Shown one piece after another: positions 6,530 to 51,894 of a DNA stretch of 64,000 nt; position 1 is the stretch's first letter; each line of letters begins with the position of its first letter. Source of the DNA: Sminthopsis crassicaudata (Eukaryota). The translations under genes were made by a program, and so were the position numbers. The notes under the pieces were generated by a model, which worked only from the letters and a program-made list of their open reading frames with translations, ran no database searches and was not told the DNA's origin. Location of the stretch: positions 444,755,261 through 444,819,260 of the forward strand of contig NC_133620.1 in NCBI RefSeq assembly GCF_048593235.1, given 5' to 3'.

Positions 6530-6616
6530 GATCCTGAGAGGAGAGAGGAGCTGATGGATCGGGGCACAGGCTGAGAGATTCTGGAGAGCTGTTCTCTGTC
6601 TCATGCTTGGACCCTC

Positions 6617-16012: not shown

Positions 16013-17318
16013 TCAGCTCAGGTATTTCATGTAGCTCTGCACCCAGGCATCTGTGGGATTGGCGCACACCTGCCGGCCCCTTTTGGTCAGGAACCTGGAG
16101 AGGGAGGAGAAGAGACATTAGAGATCGTGGAAGAAGAGGTGTATCTTTCTGATCCCTCTATGTCTAGCACTGACCACTTCCTACACATCTCTGCAGGTTC
16201 AGAAGGGATAATCCCCTTCTCTAGCAATATCTCTCAGAGCCTTCTGAGTCAATCCCATTCTCTCTAGAGGCTTGTCCAATGGGAAGTGTCTCAGGAAGCC
16301 CCTTTTTGAAATAAAATTCTGTAGCATCAGCTGAGTAAATAGCTCCATGGAGAACCCAACCTTACCCAGAGACAACCTGGGGGACTTCTTTTCCTTCACA
16401 CCAGACATCACCTGGGTCACCTGATTCATCTCTTTGACCAAGGAGCCCAATGGTCCCATTTCTTCTTTCCACCCTCTCCCTGCATCCCCTTGGGATTTCA
16501 GTAGATAGATACTCACACCACAGCTGGCTGGGAACACAGGCTGCTCGTCTCATAATAGTCTGTCACAATTTTTCTCTGGATCTGTTGGCTGACATAGGAG
16601 AAGCAGCAGGAGGTGGGAGGGTTAGAGCCCACTGGAAAGAGGAGAAGGGAGGCAGGAGATTAGTGAGATCACATATTCACACTTTCCCTTCCTTAGCTGC
16701 AGACTCCATCCCAGAGACCCTCTCTGTACTAGGCACACAGGGGATGCAGACTCTCATGTCTCCCTTCCCCGGTTCCCTCCAGTAGCAGGTGTGATTCTCA
16801 CTGTGCCTGGAGGAGAATCAAAGAGCGGCTCCCATGCTCACTGTGTAATTTCAAAATGTGTACATTTTGAAAAGGAAAAAAGGTTCTGTGGGAGCTAGAA
16901 AGAATCTCACTGGTCTGTCCAGACAATTCCTGCCTTTGGCAAGAAAGCCATTTGCTAGGAACCATGTGAGTAATTAGTGCCAGAGCCAGAATGAGAACTC
17001 ATCCAGAGACAAAACTCCATCTAGTGCCTTTTTTGCTCCTTATCTTATCTCCAACTAACATGTATCAAGCAAATACTGTCAAGGGCATGTTAATACTTTC
17101 AAGTCTAAGGCGTCTAATTCCTCCCCTTCCCTTTCAGGACTTTTCCTTGTCAATTAGGATGATCCCTATGGTTAGAGCAAGGATCTATTCAGCCCACAAC
17201 CTCCCCCTGGGCACAGTCACAAAGGGCAGGAGGAAGCTCACTTACTTGGTGCAGAGGATGCCAAAGAGCTGACGGCCATGACCATGAGGATGGAGAGGGC
17301 AGCCACAGAGACCTTCAT
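16013..17318 (-). CDS. CCL4: CCL4-like CC chemokine, copy 3; a 1-nt deletion shortens the C-terminus by 2 aa
   Basis: Exons 17318-17246 (73 nt), 16631-16517, 16094-16013. [89 protein letters not shown]. All four Cys are kept. The ancestral stop at 16008-16010 is now out of frame. Confidence 0.85.
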
Positions 17319-17403
17319 GATCCTGAGAGGAGAGAGGAACTGGTGGATCAGGGCACAGGCTGAGAGATTCTGGAGATCTGTTCTGTCTCATGTTTGGACC
17401 CTC

Positions 17404-17510
17404 TTTTTATAGGAGCATCTGGCAGATCCACAAAGAAAGCATAGAACAGAAAAATGGAGAAGTGATGTCATGGTAGGAGATGGAAACTATAACTGAGCCC
17501 AGTAAATGTA
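17404..17510 (-). promoter_or_regulatory. Copy 3 proximal promoter (truncated)
   Basis: TATA 17411-17404 and TGACATCA present. The kB site is absent and ~0.8 kb of upstream promoter is deleted relative to the paralogs. Confidence 0.6.
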
Positions 17511-20500
17511 AGGATCTTTCATGTCATTGCCTCTAGGCAGTATTTTAATTAGATCATTTGTAGACTAGTTTCTCTATGATTATCAATTGTTACTGGATGG
17601 CTTGTCCAAATTTTAATCACCAGGAAGTAATATGTTCAGGACCCTACTTAGGACTTCTGATTTCAGCCAGGGTTTGAGAAAATTTAAAAAGTGCCCTGTA
17701 ATGGGAAAAGCAGCAATAAGAGAGTGAATCTTTGGGGAGGTGGGCACATATAAAACAATGATTAGAATTATGGGCATTTTTGCATATATAATGAACATAG
17801 GTATGAGCGTAGGCTGGTTTATCCAATAAAAATAGGACTCATGTTAAAGAAGAGAAAATAATTCGTGAGTGGAAGATAGAGATGGGTGTGGATATAATGA
17901 TACTCTTTAATCTGTTCAGAAGTTGTAGGGTGGGACAGGACTCACCTCTCACTACTGGAGTCATTAAATGGAACAAGCCCTGTCTTTAGACCCCAGTGTT
18001 TTTTTTTCCTGCATGAGGAAGGTATTGCCCAAGACAATTAACATTCCTTTAAGTTCTAAGTATACATTCCTAAATGTTAGGCAGTTATGATATTCAAGTT
18101 GTATGAAGATCATGCTGCTTACTCATCCAAATCAAAAGCCACCCTCACGCTCCTTCCTAACTGGTTTTGCACTTGCTTCATTATTCTCTGCTGCCATCTC
18201 TAATTTGTTACTTCCCCCTTGTCCCACCACCACACATGCAATTCTCCTCTCTCTGTCCACTCCACACTATCTCCCATGAGTGAGGAGCCAAACCTCAGCC
18301 CTTGCACAGCTTTACATGTCTCCTTTTTCAGTGTCCAACTTCCACCATGACACATGTAGTTTTTTATAGCATATGATGTGACATATTGGTCTAAACTCAG
18401 TTTCTCTCTTGCTGCTTTCCAGACCCAACTGCCTGATTTCTTTGGATTTGCTAAACACCCTGCATCCATCTTCACTTGCTTCTAATTCTGAATGAAAGAT
18501 CCAGAATCTGGAGAAGAACTAGCAAATGAGTGAAATATTTTCAATGAGAACAAATTCAAATGCCTCTCTCCCTGCAATAAGTAGTCTTTCCAGCAGAAGG
18601 CTGAAGATGAAGGGCATTTCCCTCTTTTGCTAGTGAGATGATAGATGCAAAAAGACATTTTGACCCATGGATATCACTTTTCTTTGATTATACACATTCA
18701 CATTCACATTCATAAGAAGACTACTTCAAGGCAAATGACAGCAATGCAAAACTAAAAAAGAAAAAAAAGAAAAAGCAATAATGAAAACTGAGAGGAGAAA
18801 AGGAATTCTAGAAGGAAAGACAAGTAAGGAAATTGATTTACTATTGTGATAAACTCAGCATATTCCTGAAAACATAAGAGTATATTCAGAAGAAGGTCAT
18901 ATATTCATAAACCCTTCACTTTTCTGTTCTTCATATACAGAAATGTTCACATTTGTGGATGTTTTATTATTCATAAATAAATAATAGTTAATAAAATTAA
19001 GAATAAAATAAAAGAATAAAAAATAGTTAATTAATTAATGAAATGTGAGAGTCATGGCAAGTTGAGAGACAATGGAACAAGAGTCTGCGTATCACTTTCT
19101 TTTGGTGAATGCTTGAGATTACAGAACCTAAACTTGACTTGTTAGGTTGGGACTGTGGCCATTCTCTGGGCTCAGGGCTTCCTCTTCCTTCCATGTCATG
19201 AGTTTGTTCCTTAGTGACATACTCGCTAAATTGAGTGACATGGGACATAGAGAGATCCAAGGGAATATAGAGATCCAATATAAGAATGCCATAGGAGTAT
19301 GTCCTCAAAAGACCGAATCACAAGTTCAGTGCTACAGTAAAACTATAGAAACATCTTGTTTAGATTTTCACTAGAACACAGGGGCTCTGGGAGAAGAAAG
19401 AAAGGGAGAATGGAATAAGGTATCACTACATACTCCTGACCCAAGAAAGAAGAGAGAAGAGAAATCAAGTCTGAGCTTTAGCATTCCCTCTTGTCTACAG
19501 AGAGAAAGAAGACTTCTTTTTCCAAGAACTTTAGACTGAAACAAGGCTCTCACTCACAACTGAGCTCAGAGTCTGCCTTTGTGCAGAGGTGGTGTAGTAC
19601 AATGGGTAGAACGTTGAATTTGTGTCAGGGAGAGTGAGGTCAAAATCCTACCCCTAATACTGACTAACCTACAAAGTGACCCTGGAAAGTGAGCCAATCA
19701 TGCTCAGCCTACAGACACTGACCCTCCACCTTCCTAATCTTTTACATTTCCAATGTTTTGCTGACCTTCTCCCTTCATGTTAAAAGCTTTGTTTCAAGCT
19801 TTGAGTGTAACAGACATTTAGAAATTTATGATGTAAAATCTCCATTGACAGAAATAAAATGTAATTATTAAAGGAGATCAAAAAATGTACAAGTACCTCT
19901 TTGGGCTTCCTTCACTTGGGTTTTTCCCCCCTGGGGCTGTTTTGTGACCCACTCAACTTTTAGGAGAACAGGATTGATTCCCTCTTATTCCCTGTGGTGG
20001 CCATTCCAAATTAGCTTGGTAGATAGAAATTATGCTATTATTCAGAGTGTAGAGCAGTGTTGGAATTCAGCCTTGGATATTTCACAGCTGTATGATTGTG
20101 GAAAAATCAATATTTCAGAGCCTCACATTCCTCTTCCATTACATGGAAATAAATATAGTCCTTCTCCCTGTTTCACATGAGTTATTGAGAGAAAATTCAG
20201 TTCTTTGGAGACTTCAAAATGCCCCTTTGAATGAAAGTTCTGGAATTCAGGATCAAGGATTTAGATTTCCAAATCCAAGAACATTAGAGGGCAGGAAGTC
20301 TACTATGAACTCATTTTTCTTCCCAATTCCTAATCTCCCTCAAGACTTCATCTCCTCAAAAACCTCATGTTGCAGACAGTGGAGGGAGAGTGATATCACT
20401 GCCCACCTACCACCAGCAATAACTAATAAAAACCAGCAAACAATAATATACAACCTTTGGCTCAATAGAGCACTTTATGAGTATGAAAGGATGCTGCCTC

Positions 20501-20674
20501 TGTTATCTCATGTCAGACTTAGGGATCTGTTATCTTAAATTATTTTAAGGAATAACCTTGAAGATTAAATCTTGAAGGAATTGGCCAAGATCACACACTT
20601 AATATTTGACAAAGGCCAATTGGGAACTCCAAGGAAAACAGATGCATTTCAGGAACATAGATATGGAATATTAT

Positions 20675-20915
20675 GTACAGCACTGGTCATAGAATCAGAC
20701 TTATCTTCCCAAGCTCAATTTTGGCCTCAGACACTTTCTAGCTGTATGACCTTGGGCAAATCACCTTATCTGGTTTGTCTTATCTTTGTATCTGTCCAAT
20801 ACCCAGGAGAAGAAAATGGCAAAAAAAATACTCCAGTATCTCTGCCAAGAAAATTCCAAAGGGGTTCACAAAGAGTTAGATATAGCTGATATGACTGAGC
20901 AACAATAACAAAACA
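20675..20915 (+). mobile_element. MAR1-like marsupial SINE, duplicated with the unit
   Basis: CORE-SINE body plus tail ggagaagaaaatggcaaa...actccagtatctctgccaagaaaa...tgactgagcaacaa; paralogs at ~27340-28610 (interrupted by L1) and ~34760-35000. Confidence 0.7.
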
Positions 20916-21922
20916 ATAGTTATCTACTCAAACAAGTGACTGAAAAAATCCCCACTATCACATTCTTTGTGGATAGTCACTTAACTTCTATTTACAAACC
21001 TAAATGAGAGAAGGATCTCACAACAGCTTAACACAGCCCATTTCACCATGGACAGCTATCAGTCTTAAGTTTTCCAAATGTCAGGCCCAATTTAGATCCT
21101 AACAAATCACACCCTTTGCCTCTGTTTCTATCCATGAGTCCTAGAGACTCATCTCAATTTTTCCAATACTTGAAAACTTCCAATAGTTGAAAGCAGAAAT
21201 CATGGCTCTTCTCTTTTCCCCACTGACCGTCCCTAGTTCCTTCTAATCATCCTTTTTTGATTCTAGGCACCTGACATCCTTGATTGCTTCCTATAGACAA
21301 TGTCCAGCTATCTAATGTTCCTCTGAAACTGTGGTTACCAAAGCAGACTAAAGACTTCCTGAGTGGTCTCATGAGCTCAGAGCAATGGCCATATTGCCTC
21401 TCTGTTCCTGAAAGCTTACTTCACAATAGGGATCCATCTGGGATTTGGGGAGTCAACCTGTAAGATGGCAGTACATTCAACTCCAGAGCTATTACAGAAC
21501 TCTGGTTGTCCAAGGATGCTACACCAATCTTATGTAAAAAGAGCAAAACCCCTTCTCCTGAACCCTCATCCCGAAATGACATTAAGACTACACCAAAGAG
21601 ATATGGTTTTGAAAACTTTTATTTTGAAATTTTCATGCTACATGAAATGGAGCAGGGGATCCAAAAGTCTCTCAGGAAGAGAAGCCAGGATGATAATAGA
21701 GAGTCCCATGGGGACCAGTTGTCTTCCAGAAATGGAACAATGGAACTAATAAATACCCAAAGTCAACACCAAATAAATTCCATAAATTAAGTCTCACAGA
21801 GAAGAATGGATTATCACAGGGGAGAAGGAAGGCTGAACTGCGGGGAGAATGTATCTGAGGAGGGAAATGCTCAGCTTGGTCCATTTCCCACAAAGATCCC
21901 TTGTTTCAGGCCTCTGAGCCCC

Positions 21923-23171
21923 TCAGTTCAGCTCCAGGTCTTCCACGTAGCTCTGCACCCAGGCATCAGAGGGATTGGCGCACACCTGCCGGCCCCTTTT
22001 GGTCAGGAACCTGAGGAGGGAGGGGAGGAGAGATTAGAGATCATGGAAGAAGAGGGGTTTCTTCCTATTCCCTCCACTTCCAGTACAGACCGATTCCTGA
22101 ACATCTCTGCAGGGAGAGAAGGGACAACCCTCATCTCTAGCAATATCTCTCAGACCTTTCTGATTTAATCCCATTCTCTCTAGAGGCTTGTCCACTGGAG
22201 GGTCTCTCAGGAAGCCCCTTGTTAAAATGAAATTCTGTAACATCAGCTGGGTATGTAGCTCCATGGAGAACCCAACCTTAGCCAGAGACAACCTGGGGGA
22301 CTTCTTTTCCTTCACACCAGACATCACCTGGGTCACCTGATTCATCTCTTTGACCAGGGAGCCCAATGGTCCCATTTCTTCTTTCCGCCCTCTCCCTGTA
22401 TCCCCTTGGGATTTCAGTAGATAGATACTCACACCACAGCTGGCTGGGAGCACCGGCTGCTCGTCTCATAATAGTCTGTCACAATTTTTCTCTGGATCTG
22501 TTGGCTGACATAGGAGAAGCAGCAGGAGGTGGGAGGGTCAGAGCCCACTGGAAAGAGGAGAAGGGAGGCAGGAGATTAGTGAGATCACATGTTCACACCT
22601 TCCCTTCCTTAGGGGCAGACTCCATCCCAGAGACCCTCTCTGTACTAGGCACACAGGGGATGTGTACTCTGATGTCTTCCTTGCTCTGCTTCCCTCCAGT
22701 AGCAGGTGTGATTCTCACTGTGCCTGGAGGAGAATCAAAGATCGGCTCCCATGCTCACTATGTACATTTTGAACAAAACAAATAGTGTGGGAGCTAGAAA
22801 GAATCGTACAGGTCTGCCCAGACAATTCCTGCCTTTGGCAAGAAAGCCGCTTTGAGTAATTAGTGGCAGAGCCAGAATGAGGACTTAGACACAGAACTCA
22901 ACCTAGTGCCTTTTTTACCCCCCTCTCCTATCTCCATCTAACATTTAACAAGCAAATACTTCAAGTCCAAAGCACATAAATCCTACCCTTCCCTTCCAGG
23001 ACTCCTCCTCAAATTAGGATGATCCCTGTGGTTAGAGCAAAGATCTATCTAGCCCATGACCTCCCCCTGGGCCCAGAGTCAGGAGGAAGCTCACTTACTT
23101 GGTGCAGAAGATGCCAGAGAGCTGAAGGCCATGACCAGGAGGATGGAGAGGGCAGCCACAGAGACCTTCAT
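21923..23171 (-). CDS. CCL4: CCL4-like CC chemokine, copy 4, intact
   Basis: Exons 23171-23099, 22547-22433, 22010-21923. [91 protein letters not shown]. Confidence 0.95.
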
Positions 23172-23258
23172 GATCCTGAGAGGAGAGAGGAGCTGGTGGA
23201 TCAGGGCACAGGCTGAGAGATTCTGGAGATCTGTTCTCTGTCTCATGCGTGGACCCTC

Positions 23259-23500
23259 TTTTTATAGGGGCACCTGGGAGATCCCAGAAAGAAAGCACAG
23301 AACAGAAATGGAAATTCCAGTGAAGTGATGTCATGGTAGGAGATAGAAACTAAAACTGAGCCCAGGAAAGGTTGCTGTCAAGGCCTGAGGTTCTCCCCCC
23401 AAGACAGCTTCACTGTGGGGGAAAGAGGAGGGGGAATGAAGAGGGAAGATGCCTGCATGTGGTGGGTGACAAGTTGCTAAGGGGGAAGTGGTGAACTTGT
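23259..23500 (-). promoter_or_regulatory. Copy 4 proximal promoter
   Basis: TATA 23266-23259; TGGAATTTCC at 23319-23310; TGACATCA at ~23327-23334. Confidence 0.7.
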
Positions 23501-26500
23501 GATAGCAGCAGAGACAGAGGAAACCTATGCAAAACCAAATAAGAAAGAGAGTTTTGTTGACCCAGAACATGAAAGAATATTCAGTCTGACCTTCATACTA
23601 TTTTGATATCATAACTGCCTAGATGCTACCACTGTAGTTTTAGAGTTAGAAGGATAATTTTGATTCAACACTTGTATGTTCCAGCAAAAGAATAATAAAA
23701 AACAGGAACAACAAGAACTCTTGTTCCAGAGAGAAGTGACTTGTCTAAGATCACACTAATAGTTAGAAACAGATGCCGTATATATTTCCAGATCTGCTGA
23801 CTCCATATCTTTGTACTGACAGACAATGCTCCATATGGAGAAACCTCCATTAGTCCTTCAAGGGCACTCAGGGAGAATTCTTGTGGAAACGATGATCACA
23901 AGCCAGTCAGTGAAATGAAGATTCCATCCCTCTGCTTTGTTGTGTGATGCTTCTAATTTTCATCAGTTTGGCAATTTAAGGATACAAATTTTGTGTCATT
24001 TACAGGATACAAAAGATCATGACAGTGATTATCTCAGATCATCTTCATGATCTTATAAAAAGGGCAGAAATGATATTCTTATGTCTCATCTATTTAAGAG
24101 ACTTGCCCTAAAGTGGATAGAAGATTGAAGTCAAGAATACCCAAGTCCTGCTTATGACACTTATTAGCTTTCTGACCTTTCACTTCATATTATCCCCAGT
24201 CCAAATTTCAATCAGATCATGTGTAGACTAGTTGCTGTATAATTATCATTGGCTTGTCCAATGATGACTCCTCCAAATTGTAATAAAGAGGAAGTGAAAT
24301 GTTCAGGACTCAACCTTAGGACTTCTGATTTCAGGCAAGATTTGAGAAAATTAAATAGTACACTGACATGGGAGAAGAGGCAATATGAGAGTAAATCTCT
24401 GGGGAGGAGGGTACATATGAAACAATGATTAGAATTATGGGGCAGTTTTAAGTACATGCTGATCATAAGTATGAGCAGTGCTTGTTTTATCCAATAAAAA
24501 TAGAATTCATGTTCAGAGAAAAAATGTGTGAGGGGAAGATGGAGATAGGTGTGGATATAACGCTACTCTTTAAGGTGTTCAGAAGTGGTACGGTGGGACA
24601 GGCAGCTCTTTCAATTGTCCTGAAATTTGTTTAAGATACAACTTTCCTATCCTGACCTGGAGTCAGCAGATCTGGGACCAGATACGGGATCTGCCTCTCA
24701 CCGCTGGAGTCACAAATAGAACAAGCCCCTTCTCTGGGCCCCAGTGTTTTTTCTTGCATAAGGAGGGCTGTCCAAAACAACTAACAGTCCTTCAAGGCCT
24801 AAGTCTACACTCCTAAGACCCAGGCAGCTGTGATATCCAAGTGTATGAAGATCATGCTGCTTACTCATTCAAATCAAAAGCCACCCTCACTTTCCTTCCT
24901 AACTGGTTTTGCACTTGCTTCATCACTCTCTGCTGCCATCTCTAGTTTGTTACTTCCCCCTTGTCCCACCACCACACACGCAATTCTCCTCTCTCTGTCC
25001 ACTCCACTCTATCTCCCATAAGAAAACTACATTGAGGAGCCAAACCTCAGCCTTGCACAGCCTTACATTTCCTGGGCTCCTTTTTCAGTTTCCAAGTTCC
25101 ACCATGACACGTGCCGTTTCTTGTAGCGTATGATGTGACATATTGGTCTAAGCTCAGTTTCCTTCTGGCTGCCTTCCAGACCCAATTGCCTGATTTCCTA
25201 GGGTTTGCTAAACACCCTGCATCCCTCTTTACTTGCTTCATTTCTGAATGTAGTAACCAGAATCTGGAGAAGAACTAGCAAATGGGTGGAATACTTTCAA
25301 TGAGAACAAATTCAAATAACTCTCTCCCTGCAATAAGTAATCTTTCCAGCAGAAGGCTGAAGATGAAGGGTGTTTCCTTTGCTGATAAGGTGATCCATGC
25401 GAAATACACATTTTGAGATACACATTTTGACCCATGGATATCACTTTTCTTTTATGATGCACATTCACTTTTATAGAAAGAATCCTTTGAGGCAATTGGC
25501 AGCAATGCAAAAAAAAAAAAAAAAAAAAAAAAGAGAAAGAAAGAAAAGAACAATAATGAAAATTGAGAAGAGAAAGGGAATTCTAGTAGGAAAGACAGGT
25601 AAGGAAATTGATTTACTGTTGTGATTAACTCAGCATATTCCTGAAAACACAAGAGTATATTCAGAAGAAGGGCACAGATTCATACACCCTTCACTTTTCT
25701 GTTCTTTATATGGAGAAATGTTTATATTTGTGGATGTTTTATTATTCAGAATAAAAAATAATGAATGAATGAATGAAATGCGAGAGTCATGGCAATTTGC
25801 GAGATACTCTGATGAGAGTCTGTGTATCACTTTCTTTTGGTGAGTGCATGGGATTACAGAACCTAACCTTGCCTTCTTAGGTTTGAACTGTGGCTATTCT
25901 CTGGGCTTAGGGCTTCCTCTTCCTTCCTGTGCTGAGAGCCATAAATTACTCTCTCTATGTCCTCAAAAGACCAAATCACAAGTTCGGTGCTACAGTAAAA
26001 CTATAGAAACATCTTGTTTAGATTTTCACTAGAACACAGGGGCTCTGGGAGAAGAAGGAAAGGGAGAATGGAATAAGGAATCACTACACACTCCTGACCC
26101 AAGAAAAAAGAGAGAAAAGAAATCAAGTCTGAGCTTTAGCATTCCCTCTTGTCTACAGAGAGAAAGAAGACTTCTTTTTCCTTGAACTTTAGACTGAAAC
26201 AAGGCTCTCACTCACAACTGAGCTCAGAGTCTGCCTTTGTGCAGAGGTGGTGTAGTACAATGGGTAGAACGTTGAATTGGTGTCAGGGAGAGTGAGGTCA
26301 AAATCCTACCCCTAATACTGACTAGCCTACAAAGTGACCCTGGAAAGTGAGCCAATCATGCTCAGCCTACAGACACTGACCCTCCACCTTCCTAATCTTT
26401 TACATTTCCAATGTTTTGCTGACTTTCTCCCTTCATGTTAAAAGCTTTGTTTCAAGCTTTGAGTGTAACAGACATTTAGAAATTCATGGTTTAAAATCTC

Positions 26501-27525
26501 CATTGACAAATAAAATGTAATTATTAAAGGAGATCAAAAATGTACAGGTACCTCTTTGGGCTTCCTTCACTTGGGTTTTTACCCCCGGGGCTGTTTTGTG
26601 ACCCACTCAACTTTTAGGAGAACAGGATTGATTCCCTCTTATTTCCTGTGGGGACCATTCCAAAGTAGCCTGGTAGATAGAAATTATGCTATTATTAAAA
26701 TGTAGAGCAGTGTTGGAATTTAGCCTTGCATATTTTACAGCTGTATAAAACAGCTGTGTGTTTCCTTGTGGAAAAATCAATTAATATTTTATAATCTCAC
26801 TTTCCTCTTCCATTAAATGGAAAAAATATAGTCTTTTTCCCTATTTCACATGGTTGTTGAGAGACCATTTAGTTTTTTGGAGACTTTGCCCCTTTGAATA
26901 AAAGTTCTGGAATTCAGGATCAAGGATTTGGAGCTGCAAGTACATTAGAGGGCAGGAAGTCTACTATGAACTCATTTTCCTTCCCAATTCCTTTCAAATC
27001 TCCCTTGAGACTTCATCTCCTCAAAAGCCTCATGTTGCAGACAGTACAGGGAGAATGGTAACACTACCCACTTATCATCACCAATAACTAATAAAAATTA
27101 GCAATGAATGGTATACAACCTTTGGCTCAATAGAGCACTTTATGAGTATTAAGGATGTTCTGCTACCTGTTATCTCATATCAAACTTAGAGATCTATTGG
27201 CTTAAATTATTTTAAGTAATAATCTTGAAGATTAAATCTTGAAGGAATTGACCAAGATCACACACTTAATACTTAACAAAGGCCAATTGGAAACTCCAAG
27301 GAAAATGGGATGCATTTCAGGAACATAGATATGGAATAGTTTGTAGAATACTGGTCATGGAATCAGACAGACTTATCTTCCCAAGCTCAATTTTGGCCTC
27401 AGACACTTTCTAGCTATATGGCCTTGGGCAAGTGGCCAATCTGGTTTGTCTTAGTCTCCTTATCTGTCCAGTACACATGAGAAGAAAATGGCAAACGACT
27501 TCAGTATCTCTGCCAAGAAAATTCC

Positions 27526-28542
27526 TTTTTTTTTTTTTTTTAATTTTTTATTTTATTTTTATAATTATAACATTTTTTGACAGTACATATGCATGGGTAA
27601 TTTTTTACAACATTATCCCTTGCACTTACTTCTATTCAGATTTTTTCCCTTCCTCCCCCAACCCCCTCCCCCAGATGGCAAGCAGTCTTATATATGTTAA
27701 ATATAATACAGTATATTCTAGAAACAATATATGTGTGTAGAACCGAATTTTTTGTTGCACAGGAAGAATTGGATTCAGAAGGTAAAAATAACAGTTTACA
27801 CTCGTTTCCCAGTGTTCCTTTTCTGGATGTAGCTGATTCTGTCCATCATTAATCAATTGGAATTGGATTAGCTCTTCTCTATGTTGAAGAAATCCACTTC
27901 CATCAGAATACATCCTCATACAGTATCATTGTTGAAGTGTATAATGATCTCCTAGTTCTGCTCGTTTCACTCAGCATCAGTTGATGTAAGTCTCTCCAAG
28001 CCTCTCTGTATTCCTCCTGTTGGTCATTTCTTACAGAACAATAATATTCCATAACATTCATATACCATAGTTTACCCAACCATTCTCCAATTGATGGACA
28101 TCCATTCATCTTCCAGCTTCTAGCCACTATGAAAAGGGCTGCCACAAACATTTTGGCACATACAGGTCCCTTTCCCTTCTTTAGCATTTCTTTGGGATAT
28201 AAGCCCAGTAGTAGTACTGCTGGTTCAAAGGGTTTGCACATTTTGATAACTTTTTGGGCATAATTCCAGATTGCTCTCCAGAATGGTTGGATTCTTTCAC
28301 AACTCCACCAACAATGCATCAGTGTCCCAGTTTTCCCACATCCCCTCCAACATTCATCATTATTTGTTCCTGTCACCTTAGCCAATCTGACAGGTGTGTA
28401 ATGATACCTCAGAGTTGTCTTAATTTGCATTTCTCTGATCAATAGTGATTTGGAACACTCTTTCATATGAGTGGAAATAGTTTTAATTTCATCATCTGAA
28501 AATTGTCTGTTCATATCCTTTGACCATTTATCAATTGGAGAA
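27526..28542 (-). mobile_element. Young 5'-truncated L1 (ORF2 C-terminus, 3'UTR, poly(A))
   Basis: Uninterrupted ORF2 C-terminal frame (...CWRGCGKTGTLMHCWWSC...YEDVF*, stop at 27903); 17-bp TSD tctgccaagaaaattcc at 27509-27525 and 28543-28559; inserted inside a MAR1-like SINE. Confidence 0.95.
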
Positions 28543-29624
28543 TCTGCCAAGAAAATTCCAAAGGAGTTCACAAAGAGTTAGATATAAATGAAATGACAAA
28601 ACAGTCATCAACTCAAAAAAATTCCCACTATCACATTCTTTGGGATGTCACCTAGCTTCTGTTTACAAACCTACATAGGAGAGGGATCTCACAACAGCTT
28701 AACACAATCCATTTCACTATGAATAGCTATCAGTCTTAAGAAGTGTTTCCTAAAGTTGTACTCAATTTAGATTCTAACAAATCCCACTTTTTGCCCTTTG
28801 TTTCTATTTTTCATCCCTAGAGAGCACTCATGTCAACTTTTCCAGTACTTGAAAACTTCCCATACCTGAAAACAGAAATCATGATTTTTCTTTTTTCCCC
28901 CTGACTAACCCTAGTTCCTTCTTATCATCCTTTTGATTCTAGGCACCTGACATCCTTGATTGCTTCCTATAGACAATGTCCAGCTATCTAATGTTCCTCT
29001 GAAACTGTGGTTACCAAAACAGACCACAAGACTCCCTGAGTGGTCTCATGAGATCAGAGCAATGGGCATATTGCCTCTCTGTTCCTGAAAGTTTACTTCA
29101 CGGTAGGGATCAGTCTGGGATTTGGGGAGTCAACCTGCTGACTCAAAGTAAGATGGCAGTACATTCAACTCCCAGAGCTATTACAGAACTCTGGTTGTCC
29201 AATGATGCTACATCAGTCTTATATGACAAGAGCAGAACCTCTTCCCCTGAACTCCTCATCCCCAATGGACACTTAAATCACAGCAAAAAGATATGGTTTT
29301 GAAAACTTTTATTTTGAAATCTTCATATTAGAAATGTTAGTGGAATGAAGGAGGGGATCCAAAAGTCTCTCAGGAAGAGAAGCCAGGATAATAATAGAGG
29401 GTCTCATGGAGACCAGTTGTCTTCCAGAAATGGAACAATAGTACTAATAAATACACAAAGTCACCACCATATAAATTAAATAAGTCTCATAGAGAAGAAT
29501 GAATTATCATAGGGCAGATATTAACTCTGGAAGGCTGAACTATGGAGAGAATGCATCTGACTGGGGAAATCCTCAGTTCAGTCTATTTCCCACAAAGATC
29601 CCTTGTTTCAGGCCTCTGAGCCCC

Positions 29625-30589
29625 TCAGTTCAGCTCTATTTCTTCCACGTAGCTCTGCACCCAGGCATCAGAGGGATTGGCGCACACCTGCCGGCCCCTT
29701 TTGGTCAGGAACCTGGAGAGAAAGGGAAGGAGACATTAGAGACCATGGAAGAAGAGGGGTTTCTTTCTGTTCCCTCCAGGTCCAGCACTGATCGCTTCCT
29801 GCACTTCTCTATAGGGACAGAATAGACAATCCTCATCTCTAGCAATATGTCTCAGACCCTTCTAATTCAATCCCATTCTCTCGGGAGGCTTGTCCAATGG
29901 GAAGTCTCTCAGGAAGCCCCTTATTGAAATAAAATTCCTGTTTCATCAGCTGATGCCTTCCCTTTGGGTAGTAGACAGTCCAACCTTGGTCAGAGACAAC
30001 CTGGGGAACTTCTTTTCCTTGTCACCAGGTTTCATCTGGGTCACCTGATTCATTTCTTTGACCAAGTAGCCCAATGGTCCCATTTCTTCTTTCCACCCTC
30101 TCCCTGTATCCCCTTGACATTTCAGTAGATGATACTCACACCACAGCTGGCTGGGAACACAGGCTGCTGGTCTCATAATAGTCTATTACAAATTTTCTCT
30201 GGATCTGTTGGCTGACATAGGAGAAGCAGCAGGAGGTGGGAGGGTCAGAGCCCACTGGAAAGAGAAAAAGGGAGGCAGGAGATTAGTGAGATCACATGTT
30301 CACACCTTCCCTTCCTTAGCTGCTGATTCCATCCCAGCTACACTCCCTGTATTGAGCACACTGGGTACTCTCTTGTCTCCCTTACTCCACTTCCCTCCAG
30401 TACCAGGAGACTTTTCCTTCTCAAGTTAGGATGATCCCTGTGGTTAGAGCAAGGATCTATCCAGCCCATGACCTCAGTTTGGGCACAGCCACAGAGTCAG
30501 GAGGAAGCTCACTTACTTGGTGCAGAAGATGCCAGAGAGCTGAAGGTCATGACCAGGAGGATGGAGAGGGCAGCCACAGAGACCTTCAT
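29625..30589 (-). CDS. CCL4: CCL4-like CC chemokine, copy 5, intact, short intron 1
   Basis: Exons 30589-30517, 30254-30140, 29712-29625. [91 protein letters not shown]. Confidence 0.95.
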
Positions 30590-30677
30590 GATCCTGAGAG
30601 GAGAGAGGAGCTGGTGGATCAGGGCACAGGCTGAGAGATTCTGGAGATCTGTGCTTCTGTCTCATGCTTGGACCCTC

Positions 30678-30920
30678 TTTTTATAGGGGCATCTGGGAGA
30701 TCCCAGAAAGAAAGAACAGAACAGAAATGGAAATTCCAGTGAAGTGATATCATGGTAGGAGATTGAAACTAAAACTGAGCCCAGGAAAGGCTGCTGTCAA
30801 GGCCTGAGGTTCTCACCCCAAGACAGCTTCACTGTGGGGGAAATAGGAGGGGGGATGAAGAGGGAAAATATCTGCCTGTGGTGGGTGGCAAGGGTGCTAA
30901 GGGGGAAGTGGTGAACTTGT
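30678..30920 (-). promoter_or_regulatory. Copy 5 proximal promoter
   Basis: TATA 30685-30678; TGGAATTTCC at 30738-30729. Confidence 0.7.
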
Positions 30921-33900
30921 GATAGCAGCAGAGACAGATGAAAGCTATGCAAAAACAAATAGGAGAGAGAGTTTTGTTGACCCAGAACATGAAAGAATAT
31001 TTAGTCTAATCTTCATGCTATTTTGGTATCATAACTGCCTAGATGTTACCATTGTAGTTTTAGGTACGTGAATAATTCTTGTTCAACACTCTTATGTTCC
31101 ACCAAAAATTAATTATAATAACAACAAAAACTCTTATTCCAGAGAGAAGTGACTTGTCCAAGATCGCACTAGTAGTTAGAAACAGATCCTGGATATATTT
31201 CCAGATCTGTTAACTCCACATCTTTGTACTGACAGAGAACATTAGTCCTTCAAGAGCACTCAAGGACAATTCTTGTAGAAATGGGAATCACGAGCCCGTC
31301 AATGAAATGAGGATTTCAACCCTTTATCTGCTTTGTTGTGTGATGCTTCTAATTTTTATCATTTTGGTAATGTAAAGATATAAATTTTGTATCACATACA
31401 AAAGATTATGACACTAATTATCTCATATTATAACCTTAAAAAGCAGGCAGATTTGGTCTTATGTCTCATCAATTTAGGAGACCTGACCTAGAGTGGATAG
31501 AGGTTTGAAGTCAAGAAGACCTGAGTTCTAGTCCCATGAGACTTAGACTTAGAAGCTGTGTGGTCTTTCACCTCACAGCATTCTAATCATATTATTTGTA
31601 GACTAGTTGCTCTATAATTATCCATTTTTGCTGGATGGCTTCTTAAAACTTTAATAACCAGGAAGTGAAATATTCAGGACTCAACCTTAGGACTTCTGAC
31701 TTCAGGCAGGGTTTGAGAAAATTAAACAGTATACTGCCATGGGAGAAGAGGCAATATGAAAGTGAATTTCTGGGGAGGGGGGTACATATGAAACAATGAC
31801 TAGAATTATGGGGCAGTTTTAAGTACATAACAATCATAGATATCAGTAGATGCATTTTATCCACTAAAAATAGAATTCATGTTAAAGAAGAAAACACAAG
31901 GTATGAGTGGAAGATGGAGATGTGAATATACTGGTACTTTTTAATGTGTTCAGAAGTGGTCGGGTGGGACAGGCAGCTCCTTCCATTGTCCTGAAATGTG
32001 TTTAAAATGAAACTTTCCTATCCTGAATTGGAGTCAGCAGATCTGGACTTGCCTCTCACTATTGGAATCACCAAAAGGAATAAATCCACTTTATCTGGGT
32101 TCCAATGTTTTTTTTTCCTTGCAAAAGGAGGATGTTGCCCAAGACAATGGTCCTTCAAGGCCCAATTTTATACTCCTAAGACCCAGGCAGCTGTGATATC
32201 CAAGATGTATGAAGATCATGCTGCTTACTCATTCAAATCAAAAGCCACCCTCACACTCCTTCCTAACTGGTTTGGCACTTGCTTCATCACTCTCTGCTGC
32301 CATCTCTAGTTTGTTACTTCCCCCTTGTCCCACCACCACACACGCAATTCTCCTCTCTCTTTCCACTCCACTCTATCTCCCATGAGGAAACTCCATGAGG
32401 AGCCAAACCTCAGCCTTGCACAGCCTTACATTTCCTGGGCTCCTTTTTCCATTTCCAACTTCCACCATGACACGTGCCGTTTCTTGTAGTGTATGACGGA
32501 ACATATTGGTCTAAACTCAATTTCTCTCTTACTGTTTTCCAGACCCAACTGCCTGATTTCTTTGGGTTTGCTAAACACCCTGCATCCATCTTCACTTGCT
32601 TCTATTTCTGAATGAAGGATCCAGAATCTGGAGAAGAACTTGCAAATGACTGAAATATTTTCAATGAGAACAAATTCAAATGCCTCTCTCCCCGTAATAA
32701 GCAATCATTCCAGCAGAAGGCTGAAGATGAAATCTATTTCCCCCTTTTGCTGAGGTGATAGACAAGAAATACCACATGAGACAGACCTTTTAACCTATGA
32801 TCATCACTTTTCTTTGATTAAACAGTTTCTTATGTAGAAAGACTCCTTTGAAGCAACAGACAACAATGCAAAACTAAGAGAAAGGAATGAGCAATAATGA
32901 AAATTGAGAGGAGAAAAAGAAATCTAAAAGGAGAGACAAACCAGAAAGGGAGATGATTTACTATTGTGATAAACTCAACGTATTCCTAAAAACACCAAAG
33001 TATATTGAGAAGATCACAGATTCATACACCCTCCTCTTTTCTGTTCTTCCTATGTTGAAATATTTACATTTGTTGATATTTTAATATTAAGAATAAAAAT
33101 TAATTAATTTACATTTGAGATTCAAGTAAATTTGAGAGACACTCTGACAAAAGTCTGCATATCACTTTCTTCTGGTAAATGGTTGGATTTACAGAACCCA
33201 GTCTTGGCTTGTTAGGTTTGGACTGTGGCTATTCTCTGGGCTCAGGGTTTCCTCTTCGTCCCTGTGCTGAGAATCATGAGTAACTTCCCCTCTTTCTTCC
33301 TCAGTAACCTACTATCTAAACTACCTAAACTGAGGGACACAGAGAGATCCAAGGGAATATAGAGATCCAATACGGGAATGCTACAGGAGTAAGTCCGCAA
33401 AAGACAGAGAATCACAAGTTCAGTGCGACAGTAAACTAATAGAAACATCTTTTTTAGATATTCATTTGAACACTGGAACTTTGAGAGATGAAAGAAAGAG
33501 AGAGGAGAAGAGTGTCTCACTACACACTCCTGAACCAAGCAAAAAGAGAGAAGAGGAATCCATTCTGAGCTTTAGAATTCCCCCTTGTCTACAGATAGAA
33601 AGAGGATTTCTTTTTCTTTGAATTTTAGAAGAAATAAGGCTCTCACTGACATGCAATTGAGTTCAGATTTTGTGAGTACCCTGTCCTTTGAGCAGAAATG
33701 GTTTGGTGAAATGACTAGAAAACTGAACTTTTAATTCTAGAGACCAGGAGGTTGAGGCCAAAATCCTGTCCCAGATACTATTTAGCCTTCAAGGTGACCC
33801 TGCCATGTGAGCCAATCATGTTCAGCCTATAGACACTGACCCTTCACTTTTCTAATCCTTTACATTCCCAAAATTATGCTGAACTTTTTTCCCCTTCATA

Positions 33901-34759
33901 TTAAAACTTTGTTTCGAACTATGAGTGTGAGAGACATTTAGAAATTCATAGTGTAAATATCCATTGACAGAAAAAAAAAGAATTATAAAAGGAGATCAAG
34001 AAAAGTACAGACAACTTTTGGGACTTCCCTCACTTGGTTTTTCTCCTGAGGCCATTTTGAGACTCCCTCAATTTTTAGGAATAGAACAAGATTGATTCCT
34101 TCTTATTCCCTATGGGACCATTCCAAACTAGCCTGGTAGAGTAGAAATTATGCTACTATTTAAAGGGTAGAGCAGTGTTGGAACTCAGTCTTGAATATTT
34201 CCTAGCTGTATGATCGTGAAAAAATCAATGAATATTTCAGAGCCTCTGTTTCCTCTTCTTTTAAATGGGAATAAATATATTCCTTCTCCCTATTTCACAT
34301 AGGTTGTTGAGAAAGGATTCAGTTTTCTGGAGACCTTGAATGTCCCTTAGAAAGAAAGTTCTGGACTGTAGGATCAAGATTTTGAAGCTGAAATAATATT
34401 AGAGGGCAGGAAGTTTACTATGTTCTCATTTTCTCTTCCAATTCCTTTCAAATTTCCCTTGAGATTTAATCTCTCTGCAACCTTGTATTGCAGACAGTGC
34501 AGGGAGAATGGTAACACTGTCCACCTATCACCACCTCTAATAAAAAACAGCAAAGAATAATATACAACCTTTGGCTCAATAAAGCATTTTATCAGTCTTA
34601 AAGCATGTTCTGCTGCCCCTGTTATCTCATGACAGACTCAGAGAAGTCTTAAGGGATATCCAGGAGAGAAAGTCCCAAGATCACACAGTTAATATCTAAC
34701 AAAAGCCCTTGGAAATGCCAAGGAAAACTAGATGCATTTCAGAAACATAAATATATGGA

Positions 34760-35000
34760 ATAGTGCAAGGAATGTTGGATGTGAGATCAGGCAAATTCAT
34801 CTTCCTAAGTTCAAATTTGACCTCAGACATTCTAGTTGTGTGACCTTGGGCAAGTCACCTATTCTTGTTTTCCTCAGCCTCCTCATCTATCCCATGAGCT
34901 GGAGAAGAAAATGGCAAACTACTCCAGTACCTCTGCCATGAAAACACCAAAGGGGTTCACAAAGAGTTAGATATAACTGAAACGACTGAGCAACAATAAT
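34760..35000 (+). mobile_element. MAR1-like SINE
   Basis: Same body and tail as 20675-20915. Confidence 0.7.
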
Positions 35001-36079
35001 AAGACATAGTCATCTACTCAGAAAAGCAACTGAAAAAAATCCCCACAATTACATTCTTTGTGTATGGTCATCTAGCTTCTGTTTAAAGACTTGCATGGGA
35101 AAGAGATTTCACCAGAGCTTAGCAGAGTCCGTTTCACTATGGGTAGCTATCGGTCTTAGGAAGTTTTTCCTAATGTAAGACCCAATTTAGATGCTACCAA
35201 ATCCTACCCCTCAACTTTGTTTCTACCCTTGATCCCTAGAGAGCACTCATCTCAACTTTTCTAATACTTAAAAACTTCCCATATTTGAAAGCAGAAATCA
35301 TGGCTCTTCTCTTTTCCTCTCTGAGTATTCCTAGTTTCTTCAAATCATTCTCTTCTGATTCTAGGCACTTGATGTCCTTGGTTGCCTTCCTCTGGACAAT
35401 GTCTAGCTAACCAATATTCTTCCGAAACTGTGGGTACCAAAAGAGATCATAAGACTCCCTGGGTGGTCTTATCAGATCAGACAATGGGCATATTGCCTCT
35501 CTATTCCTGGAAGCATGCTTCCAACGGATCAGTCTGGGATTTGGGGAGTCAACCTGCTGACTCAAACTACACGACAGTACATTCAACATCAATTCATTAG
35601 TTCAACAGAACTAGTGCAGAACTTTGGTTGTCCAATAATGCTACGCCAATCTTACATGATAAGAATAGAACCCCTTTTCCTGAATCCCTTATCCCCAAAG
35701 AACATTGAATCCACAGCAAAAAATAAAGCTTTAGAACGTTTTATTCTCAAATTTTTGTCCAACAGATGTTCATGGAATCAAGCAAATGACCTAAGATTTC
35801 TAATTAATAGCAGCTAAGCTGCCAAGAGAGGTCCCCATGGGGGACAGTATGTTCCAGAAATGGAATAATAGTACTAACAATATATTAATAATAAAATGCT
35901 TGGTGGCAAAAATGCCATCAAATAGTATAAATTAAGTCTCATGGAGAAGAATGAATTATAATGAGGGAGAGCATCTCAAAAATACTGGACTTTGGGGAGA
36001 ATGCATCTGACTGGGGAATTCCTCAGCTCGGTCCATTTCCCACAAAGATCCCTTGTTTCAGGCCTCTGAGCCCCTCAGT

Positions 36080-37379
36080 TCAGCTCCAGGTCTTCACGTA
36101 GCTCTGCACCCAGGCATCTGTGGGATTGGCGCACACCTGCCGGCCCCTTTTGGTCAGGAACCTGGAGAGAAAGAGAAGGAGACATTAGAGATCGTGGAAG
36201 AAGAGGGGTTTCTTTCTGTTCCCTCCATGTCCAGCACTGACCGCTTCCTGCACATCTTTGCAGGGACAGAAGGGACAATCCTCATCTCTAGCAATATCTC
36301 TCAGACCCTTCCGAGTCAATCCCATTCTCTCTAGAGGCTTGTCCAAGGGAAGCCCCTCGTTGAAATAAAATTCCTGTAGCATCAGTTGATACTTCCCTTT
36401 GGAGAATTAGCTCCATAGATAGCCTAACCTTGGTCAGAGACAACCTGGGGAACTTCTTTTCCTTGTCACCAGGTTTCTCCTGGGTCACCTGATTCATCTC
36501 TTTGACCAAGGAGCCCAATGGTCCCATTTCTTCTTGCCACCCTCTCCCTGTATCCCCTTGGGATTTCAGTAGATAGATACTCACACCACAGCTGGCTGGG
36601 AACACAGGCTGCTCGTCTCATAATAGTCTGTCACAATTTTTCTTTGGATCTGTTGGATGACATAGGAGAAGCAGCAGGAGGTGGGAGTATTTAAGCTCAC
36701 TGGAAAGAGGAGAAGGGAGGCAGGAGATTAGTGAGATCACATGTTCACACCTTCCCTTCATTAGCTGCAGACTCCTTCCCAGAGACCCTCTCTGTACTAG
36801 GCCCACAGGGAATGCAGACTCTCATGTCTCCCTTATCCTGCTCCCCACCAGTACCAGGTGTGATTCTCACTGTACCTGAAGGAGAATCAGAAGAGCTATT
36901 CCCGTGCTCACTGTGTCTATTTTGGAAAAAAAAAATTAAGTAGTGTGGGAACTAGAGAGAATCTCATGGATCTATTCAAACAACTCCTGCCTTTGGCAAG
37001 AAAGCCACTTGTTAGAAATCATATGAGTAATTAGAGGCAGAATCAGAAGGAGAACTCAGCCAGACTCAGAACTCAACCTACTGCCCTTTTTGCTCCCCCC
37101 CCATCCTATTTCTATCTAAGATTTAACAAACAAATACTTTCAAGGGCATGTTAATACCTTCAAGTCCAAGGCATATCAATCCTACTTGATCTTACCCTTC
37201 CTTTTCAAGTCTCCTCCTTCTCTAGTTAGGATGATCCCTGTGGTTAGAGCAAGCATCTATCCAGCCCATGACCTCAGCCTGGGCACAGAGCAGGAGGAAG
37301 CTCACTTACTTGGTGCAGAGGATGCCAGACAGCTGAAGGCCACGATGAGGATGGAGAGGGCAGCCACAGAGACCTTCAT
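36080..37379 (-). CDS. CCL4: CCL4-like CC chemokine, copy 6; altered N-terminus and 1-nt deletion near the C-terminus
   Basis: Exons 37379-37310, 36699-36585, 36161-36080. [88 protein letters not shown]. The ancestral stop at 36075-36077 is out of frame. Confidence 0.85.
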
Positions 37380-37439
37380 GATCCCCAGAGAACAGGGGAG
37401 CTGAAAGAGCAGAGTACAAGCTGAGAGACTCTGGGTCTC

Positions 37440-37690
37440 TTTTTATAGTAGTTTCTGGGCAAACCCAGAGAGTAAGAAGGAACAGGAGTGGTAATTCCAG
37501 TGGCAATCTGATGTCATTTTTGGAGAAAGAAATCAAAACTTAGCCCAGGAAATATAAAGCTGCTGCCAGGGAATAAACTTCTGTTCCCCAGTTTCATCAT
37601 GAGGGAAAGGGGAGGGAGGATCGAGAGAGGAAAAATGAGTATGTGGTAAAGTGGTATGTGTGCTAAGGGGGAAGTGGTGAACTTGAATTA
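37440..37690 (-). promoter_or_regulatory. Copy 6 proximal promoter (divergent type)
   Basis: TATA 37447-37440; kB variant TGGAATTACC at 37499-37490; TGACATCA retained; GGGGAAGT retained at ~37668-37675. Confidence 0.65.
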
Positions 37691-38694
37691 GTAACAAAAA
37701 GATGACACATATGCAAAACTAAACTGGAAGGAGAGTTCCGTCGACTACCATTGACCCTAAGAAGGAATATTCAACATGGCCTTCAAACTGCTTTGATATC
37801 ATAACTGCTGAGTTCTTAGCATTACAGATTTAGAACTAGAAGGGTCTTTAATGGTCTAGTCCAATACTCTCAGAATCTAGAGAAAGAACTGTGGCCCAGA
37901 AGGAAGTAACTTATCCAAGATCACACTGGTAGTCAGAAAAAAAATCTGATATATTGTTTCCACATCTGTTAACTTCATACTCACTTTATATAAGAGCATG
38001 TCCATTTATACACATATACATATATACACAGATACATGTGTATATTCATGCTTATGTGGAGAATGGTCCATACCAAGGACACCTCCATGGTTCTTTAAAG
38101 GCACTCAGGATAATTTTTGCACAAATGGTACCTATAAAAGACCACTGGTCTTAGTCTATCCCTACATTTTTTTCTTATGTGATGATTTTAACTACTTACA
38201 TTTGTATAACACTTTAAAGACCCAAAAGATTTTGATACTAATTATTTTAAATCAGCTTCACAAGAACTCTATGAAACAGGCAGGCTTGTATTCTTATATC
38301 TTGCTTATTTATGAGACTGCTTCTAGGAGTAGATAGACTTCTAGGCTTGAAGTCAGGAAGATCTGGGTATAAGTTCCATTTTTGAAAATTATTAGCTGTG
38401 AGATCTGTAACCTCATACCAGCTTTTGTTAAATGCCATGTCCAAATTTTGACAACCAGAAAGTGGAAAAGGATTCAGCCTTTGACCTTCGGAGTTCAAGC
38501 AGGATTTGACAGAATTCTGGGGCACAACCCCATGAGACCCTCTGAGGAGGAGTGCAGGTTAGAATTGTGAAACACTTGTTAGTACACAACTTGTTCATGC
38601 TTTTTCGTCCAATGGAAATGAATTTCATATTAAAGAAGATAAAACAATATGTGGAGGGAAGATGGAGATGGGGGTGAAAGTAATGTTTCTATAT

Positions 38695-51044: not shown

Positions 51045-51894
51045 NNNNNNNNNNNNNNNNNNNNNNNNNNNNNNNNNNNNNNNNNNNNNNNNNNNNNNNN
51101 NNNNNNNNNNNNNNNNNNNNNNNNNNNNNNNNNNNNNNNNNNNNNNNNNNNNNNNNNNNNNNNNNNNNNNNNNNNNNNNNNNNNNNNNNNNNNNNNNNNN
51201 NNNNNNNNNNNNNNNNNNNNNNNNNNNNNNNNNNNNNNNNNNNNNNNNNNNNNNNNNNNNNNNNNNNNNNNNNNNNNNNNNNNNNNNNNNNNNNNNNNNN
51301 NNNNNNNNNNNNNNNNNNNNNNNNNNNNNNNNNNNNNNNNNNNNNNNNNNNNNNNNNNNNNNNNNNNNNNNNNNNNNNNNNNNNNNNNNNNNNNNNNNNN
51401 NNNNNNNNNNNNNNNNNNNNNNNNNNNNNNNNNNNNNNNNNNNNNNNNNNNNNNNNNNNNNNNNNNNNNNNNNNNNNNNNNNNNNNNNNNNNNNNNNNNN
51501 NNNNNNNNNNNNNNNNNNNNNNNNNNNNNNNNNNNNNNNNNNNNNNNNNNNNNNNNNNNNNNNNNNNNNNNNNNNNNNNNNNNNNNNNNNNNNNNNNNNN
51601 NNNNNNNNNNNNNNNNNNNNNNNNNNNNNNNNNNNNNNNNNNNNNNNNNNNNNNNNNNNNNNNNNNNNNNNNNNNNNNNNNNNNNNNNNNNNNNNNNNNN
51701 NNNNNNNNNNNNNNNNNNNNNNNNNNNNNNNNNNNNNNNNNNNNNNNNNNNNNNNNNNNNNNNNNNNNNNNNNNNNNNNNNNNNNNNNNNNNNNNNNNNN
51801 NNNNNNNNNNNNNNNNNNNNNNNNNNNNNNNNNNNNNNNNNNNNNNNNNNNNNNNNNNNNNNNNNNNNNNNNNNNNNNNNNNNNNNNNNNNNNN
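51045..51894. other. Assembly gap (850 N)
   Basis: Run of n flanked by CT-rich low-complexity sequence. Confidence 1.

Follow-up and report, generated by a model that had tools for sequence, protein, structure and literature searches.

In Sminthopsis crassicaudata, the fat-tailed dunnart (GCA_048593235.1), a 64,000-nucleotide stretch of chromosome CM109184.1 (hereafter the window, with position 1 at approximately 444,755,261) holds seven CCL3/CCL4-like (MIP-1) chemokine genes, all on the minus strand. Two of these, copies 3 and 6, have each lost a single base pair within the last five codons, at different positions, and the predicted products of both end at Ser67 and lack the acidic tail of the family. 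The reading that we favour, at about an even chance, is that they are redundant, fast-turnover duplicates whose altered tails are tolerated, being near-neutral or mildly impairing, and not innovations that were selected twice. They stem from a tandem expansion that, under this reading, gave redundant CCL4-like duplicates under weakened constraint, and each took its own 1-bp deletion after the split from the lineage of devil and antechinus. The -1 frame carries both predicted products to Ser67 with the loss of E67, L68 and N69, whereas the signal peptide and a complete, foldable chemokine domain are still encoded, joined to a tail that has turned basic.

The two lesions are seen directly in an alignment of the seven exon-3 ends. 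Where the other copies read CTGGAG copy 3 reads CT-GAG, a C of the plus strand being missing between window positions 16019 and 16020, and where the others read GTGGAA copy 6 reads GT-GAA (Table 1). The copy 3 deletion is preceded by three substitutions that convert GTG GAA GAC to ATG AAA TAC, all at the first codon position and all unique to this copy. The translations end in ...SYMKYLS and ...SYVKTWS, respectively, each followed by a stop codon, and alignment to human CCL4 (1HUM/2X6L, E = 8e-29) makes the terminal serine mature residue 67 in both, with precursor residue 23 of copy 3 aligning to mature residue 1 of 1HUM. The original prediction for this stretch had described two different single-nucleotide losses, at CTG-GAG in copy 3 and GTG-GAA in copy 6, and a shared end at Ser67 without the acidic tail; the exon-3 alignment bears out the former, and the translations and the 1HUM alignment the latter.

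What does not survive is the suggestion that Ser67 was reached twice as convergence at the level of the residue. Both shifted frames read AGC TGA at their end, and when each base of the coding sequence was deleted in turn in silico from the intact ...EDLELN copies, deletions at 71 positions within coding positions 194-265, a span of 72 nt at the end of the coding sequence that takes in nearly the whole of exon 3, reached this same AGC-TGA. The shared serine is therefore forced, because the -1 frame of exon 3 is open to a single AGC-TGA, where almost every -1 shift in this exon of an ...EDLELN copy ends; for the ...EEIELN copies that frame closes two codons sooner. The substitution D6N, which the original prediction had listed as a further feature of copies 3 and 6, is indeed present in both but is not specific to them, as copy 7 and the devil and antechinus CCL4 orthologues have it too, and it is therefore the normal state of the dasyurid CCL4 orthologue.

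For comparison, approximately 60 kb of the array in devil and 21 kb of that in antechinus were tiled from the loci of annotated proteins. Synteny is kept, the devil CCL4 gene (the orthologue of copy 7) being followed by dev_G0, G1-G5 and a dead G6, and copy 1 of the dunnart pairs with devil G4 as its 1:1 orthologue (100/100 support). In a tree of intron 2, copies 2-6 cluster together; copy 3 falls beside copies 2 and 4, and the neighbours of copy 6 are copy 5 and dev_G0. A sister relationship of copies 3 and 6 is rejected by an approximately unbiased (AU) test (p = 0.029, the group having been named after the tree was seen). Judged from these sequence comparisons, copies 3 and 6 are non-sister members of a lineage-specific tandem expansion of CCL4-like genes. 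Exon 3 is an unshifted 88 nt in all seven well-preserved devil and antechinus copies as well as in dev_G0; since the two copies are non-sister and exon 3 is unshifted in the other species, each deletion has its own origin within the dunnart lineage. A single lesion inherited by copies 3 and 6 as sisters was also considered, and is ruled out because the deletions sit at different positions and both the trees and the AU test speak against it. Related dasyurids had been proposed as a place to look for the deletions: neither occurs in the devil and antechinus copies examined, which supports their separate origin. The terminal branches of copies 3 and 6 amount to 0.04-0.10 substitutions per intron site, similar to the species divergence between copy 1 and devil G4, and the two gene lineages, as distinct from the deletions, are therefore old.

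Intron indel rates, taken as neutral, predict 0.5-0.8 indels per coding sequence on the branches of copies 3 and 6. At that rate the probability of at least two tolerated tail indels is 0.01-0.04 for five to seven copies and 0.12-0.22 for the approximately 20 copies of the family, so that across the family two such events are not rare. Unique derived changes, polarised by the dasyurine copies, are most numerous in the two shifted genes: copy 3 has five nonsynonymous changes and one synonymous, and copy 6 has seven and two, in addition to the deletion in each, compared with one and one in copy 2, one and one in copy 4, and two and one in copy 5, none of which has a deletion.

Several observations nevertheless weigh against tolerated drift. 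Two uniformly placed deletions would both fall in the last 15 of 273 nt with p ~0.003. The lineage-specific events are clustered, four of the seven in copy 3 lying within 12 nt at the tail (p ~0.009) and six of the ten in copy 6 within 12 nt at the N-terminus (p ~0.0002). E64K and D65Y of copy 3 were acquired separately from the deletion, so that both tails are without acidic residues, and together with the clustering at tail and N-terminus these two changes fit directional remodelling as well as they fit drift. The body of copy 3 (codons 1-84, compared with devil G3) is as constrained as that of its intact siblings, with omega 0.14 against 0.12-0.19, and it is therefore not an old pseudogene; omega for copy 6 is 0.28. 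It weighs, too, that the evidence for the copy 3 deletion, which is very probably real, is the assembly itself, and that the proteins of copies 3 and 6 are predicted from gene models. A gene-conversion donor for the copy 3 tail was sought in the window and in the fetched devil and antechinus loci, and none was found; a single complex mutation, or else a series of directional steps, reshaped the tail.

The consequences for the protein are concentrated at its C-terminus. Copies 3 and 6 carry the signal leader (MKVSVAAL...), CC motif and two further cysteines of a CC chemokine, and Pfam PF00048 is precomputed for both proteins, whereas neither has the conserved acidic ...D-L-E-L-N C-terminus of the MIP-1 subfamily. 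AlphaFold2 models of both adopt E-E-E-H topology with a core predicted local distance difference test score (pLDDT) of 85-95, and the C-terminal helix extends to the penultimate residue (last-block pLDDT 92 for copy 3 and 85 for copy 6); the support that this gives to the fold is weak because the method is insensitive to such tail changes. Acidity is lost completely as ...VEDLELN becomes ...MKYLS or ...VKTWS, and the charge of the tail moves from about -3 to +1. Residue 67 is acidic (E or D) in 128 of the 133 mammalian and avian homologues retrieved, and serine occurs only in copies 3 and 6; L68 and N69, which are absent from both, are nearly as conserved.

The polymer contacts specific to CCL4 are D27 and E67, and copies 3 and 6 have E67 replaced by serine and D27 retained. 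In CCL5, E26 and E66 are critical for self-association, the acidic pair facing the basic 40s loop of the neighbouring dimer, and E66S is a stable dimer (PMC12009402); MIP-1alpha and MIP-1beta are covered along with RANTES by Czaplewski 1999, in so far as that study is cited in PMC12009402. In the CCL3 polymer D6 makes an inter-dimer contact, depolymerising mutants alter behaviour in vivo, and the CCL3-derived paralogue CCL18 is naturally mostly monomeric (PMC4355285). The background that the original prediction had given on acidic self-association residues is thus sound (PMC12009402; PMC4355285). By analogy with E66S/E67-type mutants it is plausible that the products of copies 3 and 6, if secreted, would self-associate less than those of their neighbours.

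This chemistry invites an adaptive interpretation, in which copies 3 and 6 are twice-evolved, selected, secreted CCL4-like chemokines without an acidic tail that act as non-polymerising, fast-diffusing and short-lived signals beside depot-forming paralogues. We consider it improbable, although much is consistent with it: E67 is the residue classically tied to aggregation (PMC12009402, citing Czaplewski 1999), every acidic residue of the tail is gone from both copies, with point changes apart from the deletion contributing in copy 3, the chemokine domain is untouched by either deletion, the body of copy 3 is under purifying selection, the lineage-specific changes are significantly clustered, and there is a natural precedent in CCL18, which is mainly monomeric (PMC4355285). 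However, the common Ser67 is automatic, two tolerated tail indels are unremarkable among some 20 family copies, D27 as the other aggregation residue is kept, and the near-invariant L68 and N69 have been lost along with E67. Moreover, copy 3 is without a conserved promoter element and some 830 bp of upstream sequence, and no spliced contigs were seen in the DNA-like 'RNA?' runs X7 and X8 (both described below). The broader proposition that the array holds natural, non-polymerising CCL4-like chemokines which arose twice and were retained by selection, as a marsupial parallel to primate CCL18, appears to us slightly less probable still. If true, it would mean that the animal has one signal in two forms, one that builds depots and one that diffuses fast and is rapidly cleared.

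The adaptive interpretation is tempered further by signs of weakened constraint, namely the promoter lesions of copy 3 and the absence of the CC motif from the devil orthologue of copy 6. Copy 3 retains its proximal 190 bp, including the TATA box and TGACATCA. A 10-bp deletion, among promoter lesions at window positions 17465-17545, takes out the kappaB-like element GGAATTTCC, which we take to be an NF-kappaB-type site and which is intact in 12 of 16 promoters from three species, true CCL4 orthologues included. Further upstream, copy 3 lacks approximately 830 bp found in copies 1, 4 and 5 between about -200 and -1030; this region differs by 4-8% among the siblings, as against 9-16% for their introns.

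Copy 6, judged by sequence affinities, belongs to an old divergent lineage. Its promoter is approximately 28% different from those of its dunnart neighbours, the promoter tree pairs it with dev_G0 at 100/100, and in both promoters the kappaB-like element is mismatched and a gap follows the TATA box. Decay of the copy 6 promoter, suggested by 23% private divergence, was rejected as the devil orthologue has the same promoter type; the promoter is therefore an old, distinct type and not a decayed one. The devil orthologue (dev_G0; L009:18688-20687, devil CM109177.1) has an open 91-aa frame with an intact ...VEDLELN tail, lacks the initial cysteine of its CC motif (TSSCF) and also carries D27G and R48W. 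RefSeq and UniProt models of dev_G0 have long N-terminal extensions (136-140 aa). Asparagine 6 and threonine 7 in the rewritten N-terminus of copy 6 agree with the CCL3-type NTPT motif of other marsupial paralogues.

Weakened constraint might have gone further, such that copies 3 and 6 are dead or dying pseudogenes, untranscribed or encoding an unstable protein, whose frames are still open through the recency of the lesions and through gene conversion of exons. This would fit the private exon/intron rate ratios, which reach 0.94 and 1.17 in copies 3 and 6, respectively, and only 0.14-0.41 in copies 1, 4 and 5 (counts are small and gene conversion is likely), the mosaic exon patterns, such as EEIELN common to copies 2 and 5 and a 70-nt exon 1 common to copies 1, 2 and 6, the promoter damage of copy 3 and the missing CC motif of dev_G0. 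We nevertheless regard it as unlikely. Start codons, splice sites, TATA boxes, poly(A) signals and all four cysteines are intact, each copy has a single frame-breaking lesion and that lesion lies within the last five codons, codons 1-84 of copy 3 show two nonsynonymous changes where approximately 10-16 would be expected under neutrality along its branch, and RefSeq models both copies as coding.

Independent sequencing data were examined through Logan contigs of the DNA runs X1 (sample S1) and X3 (sample S2) and of two runs labelled 'RNA?', X7 and X8. Contigs were aligned to the intact copy 4 at a likeness threshold of 85%, so that both lesions would show as simple deletions. A copy 6-type loss of one letter (place 21943 in copy 4 coordinates, between TTC and CAC) is found in one contig of X1 and one of X3, with depths of 116 of 1243 and 21 of 425, respectively. 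The X1 contig is at about twice single-copy depth (116 compared with ~60) and that of X3 at about single-copy depth; the doubling may reflect copy-number variation or k-mers common to another copy. The copy 3 deletion (place 21934/5) is not listed in any of the four runs; minor graph paths are dropped from Logan contigs. No run was returned for a 61-nt query with the deletion at its centre, of which only three index words were sampled. A contig of the copy 3 3′ untranslated region is present and halts at a graph branch point just before the lesion, and X1 lacks any place with the C>A base, so that no copy 3 tail contig comes from this run. Because minor paths are dropped, the runs neither confirm nor refute the copy 3 deletion. 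Recovery of both deletions from reads or other individuals had been suggested as a check, and it has succeeded for copy 6, in two further samples, and not for copy 3.

These observations bear on whether the copy 3 deletion, or far less probably both deletions, could stem from an error of assembly or consensus, or be confined to the reference animal. None of the tail-specific words of copy 3 that were sampled occurs in an indexed run, and neither the deletion nor the C>A base is carried by a contig of X1 or listed for X3, X7 and X8, even though the neighbouring untranslated region is represented. However, such absence is weak evidence given the way in which the contigs are built, the deletion lies in a GG dinucleotide and not in a long homopolymer, it is flanked by three substitutions unique to copy 3, and the copy 6 deletion is found in two samples. 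We therefore think an artefact very improbable.

The same runs were searched for transcripts. Around window positions 21750-22600, X7 and X8 give intron and downstream contigs at exon-like depth, and no exon 2-exon 3 joints were seen in them for any copy; both behave like DNA or chromatin libraries and hence carry no information on the transcription of the copies. Exact-protein look-ups with copies 2, 3, 6 and 7 matched the reference genome only, and as the intact copies are likewise without matches in transcript assemblies this absence is uninformative.

Table 1. Features of the dunnart CCL4-like array, in window coordinates.
Feature	Position	Strand	Description
Copy 3 gene (XP_074121654.1, 89 aa)	16013..17318	-	Exon 1 17246-17318, exon 2 16517-16631, exon 3 coding 16013-16094; GT-AG introns
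Copy 3 tail lesion	16019..16030	-	1-bp deletion and three substitutions (16024 D65Y, 16027 E64K, 16030 V63M); new stop 16013-16015
Copy 3 poly(A) signal, AATAAA	15693..15698	-	315 nt after the stop
Copy 3 truncated promoter	17319..17545	-	TATA and TGACATCA kept, GGAATTTCC lost; sibling homology ends at ~-191
Copy 4, intact comparator	21923..23171	-	...VEDLELN; reference for contig alignment
Copy 6 gene (XP_074119621.1, 88 aa)	36080..37379	-	Exon 1 37310-37379, exon 2 36585-36699, exon 3 coding 36080-36161
Copy 6 1-bp deletion	36095..36096	-	One C of plus-strand TTCCAC; E64-D65-L66-E67 to K-T-W-S, then stop
Copy 6 rewritten N-terminus	36686..36697	-	Mature residues 4-7 GSDP to SLNT; clustering p ~0.0002
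Copy 6 promoter, old distinct type	37380..37780	-	88% identity over 415 bp to the devil orthologue dev_G0

The stop codons of the array end at window positions 5374, 11181, 16013, 21923, 29625, 36080 and 45373. Each gene has three exons with conserved phases, exon 1 being of phase 1 and building the APM... mature N-terminus, and GTAAGT and GTGAGT donors with cag acceptors are found in all seven copies, as are a TATA box and an AATAAA some 300-335 nt past the stop. RefSeq has models for all seven, labelled 'C-C motif chemokine 4-like'. Three predicted proteins match RefSeq entries without a difference, and the exact copy 3 product is on record for the dunnart genome. The RefSeq models of copies 1 and 4 begin at an upstream in-frame ATG in the 5′ untranslated region, which gives products of 115 and 116 aa with an MRQRT... 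extension before the signal peptide (window 6530-6604 in copy 1 and 23172-23246 in copy 4), and these starts are probably an annotation artefact. Copy 4 also carries L34R (SSRC in place of the conserved SSLC; window 22453-22455) beside Cys35, and given this change copy 2 or copy 5 is perhaps a safer intact control. Intron 1 of copy 5 is 262 nt long (window 30255-30516), as against 458-614 nt in the other copies, owing to several private deletions. An assembly gap of 850 N lies downstream of the chemokine array at window positions 51045-51894. In devil and antechinus the arrays end in a strongly diverged CCL4-like copy (L005:16400-18740 and L006:15772-17055); that of devil, interrupted by several stops and frame disruptions, is clearly a pseudogene.

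Among known systems, the closest solved structure is that of human CCL4 (1HUM, 2X6L), which shares with the dunnart copies the three-exon gene, the APMGS(D/N)PPT N-terminus and the four cysteines, and which ends in ...VYDLELN where they end in ...MKYLS or ...VKTWS. Engineered CCL5 E66S and E26A and their MIP-1alpha and MIP-1beta equivalents (Czaplewski et al. 1999) resemble copies 3 and 6 in that E66S places a serine at the acidic position 66/67 with the core intact. The dunnart change, by contrast, is natural and made by a frameshift, removes L68-N69, alters residues 63-66 and keeps D27. Human CCL18 is, like copies 3 and 6, a natural tandem-duplicate relative of CCL3 and CCL4 in the same cluster, and its self-association is altered (PMC4355285), but it differs at the N-terminus (K8, not P8) and in regulation and receptors, whereas in the dunnart copies P8 is kept and the tail is what differs. 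Human CCL3L and CCL4L are likewise lineage-specific tandem MIP-1 duplicates that encode slightly different proteins and include some non-functional variants. The dunnart copies are much older, with 4-10% neutral divergence on their own branches, and what sets them apart is a frameshift at the C-terminus.

Self-association of CCL3, CCL4 and CCL5 governs their range, half-life and activity in vivo, and nearly all that is known of E66/E67 comes from engineered mutants. Identical ends after frameshifts can be imposed by the alternative reading frame, which urges caution in similar cases. If copies 3 and 6 are silent or inactive, they would represent the ordinary birth-and-death turnover of an expanded immune gene cluster, whereas natural paralogues without E67 beside intact siblings would be a ready-made evolutionary experiment on why chemokines polymerise.

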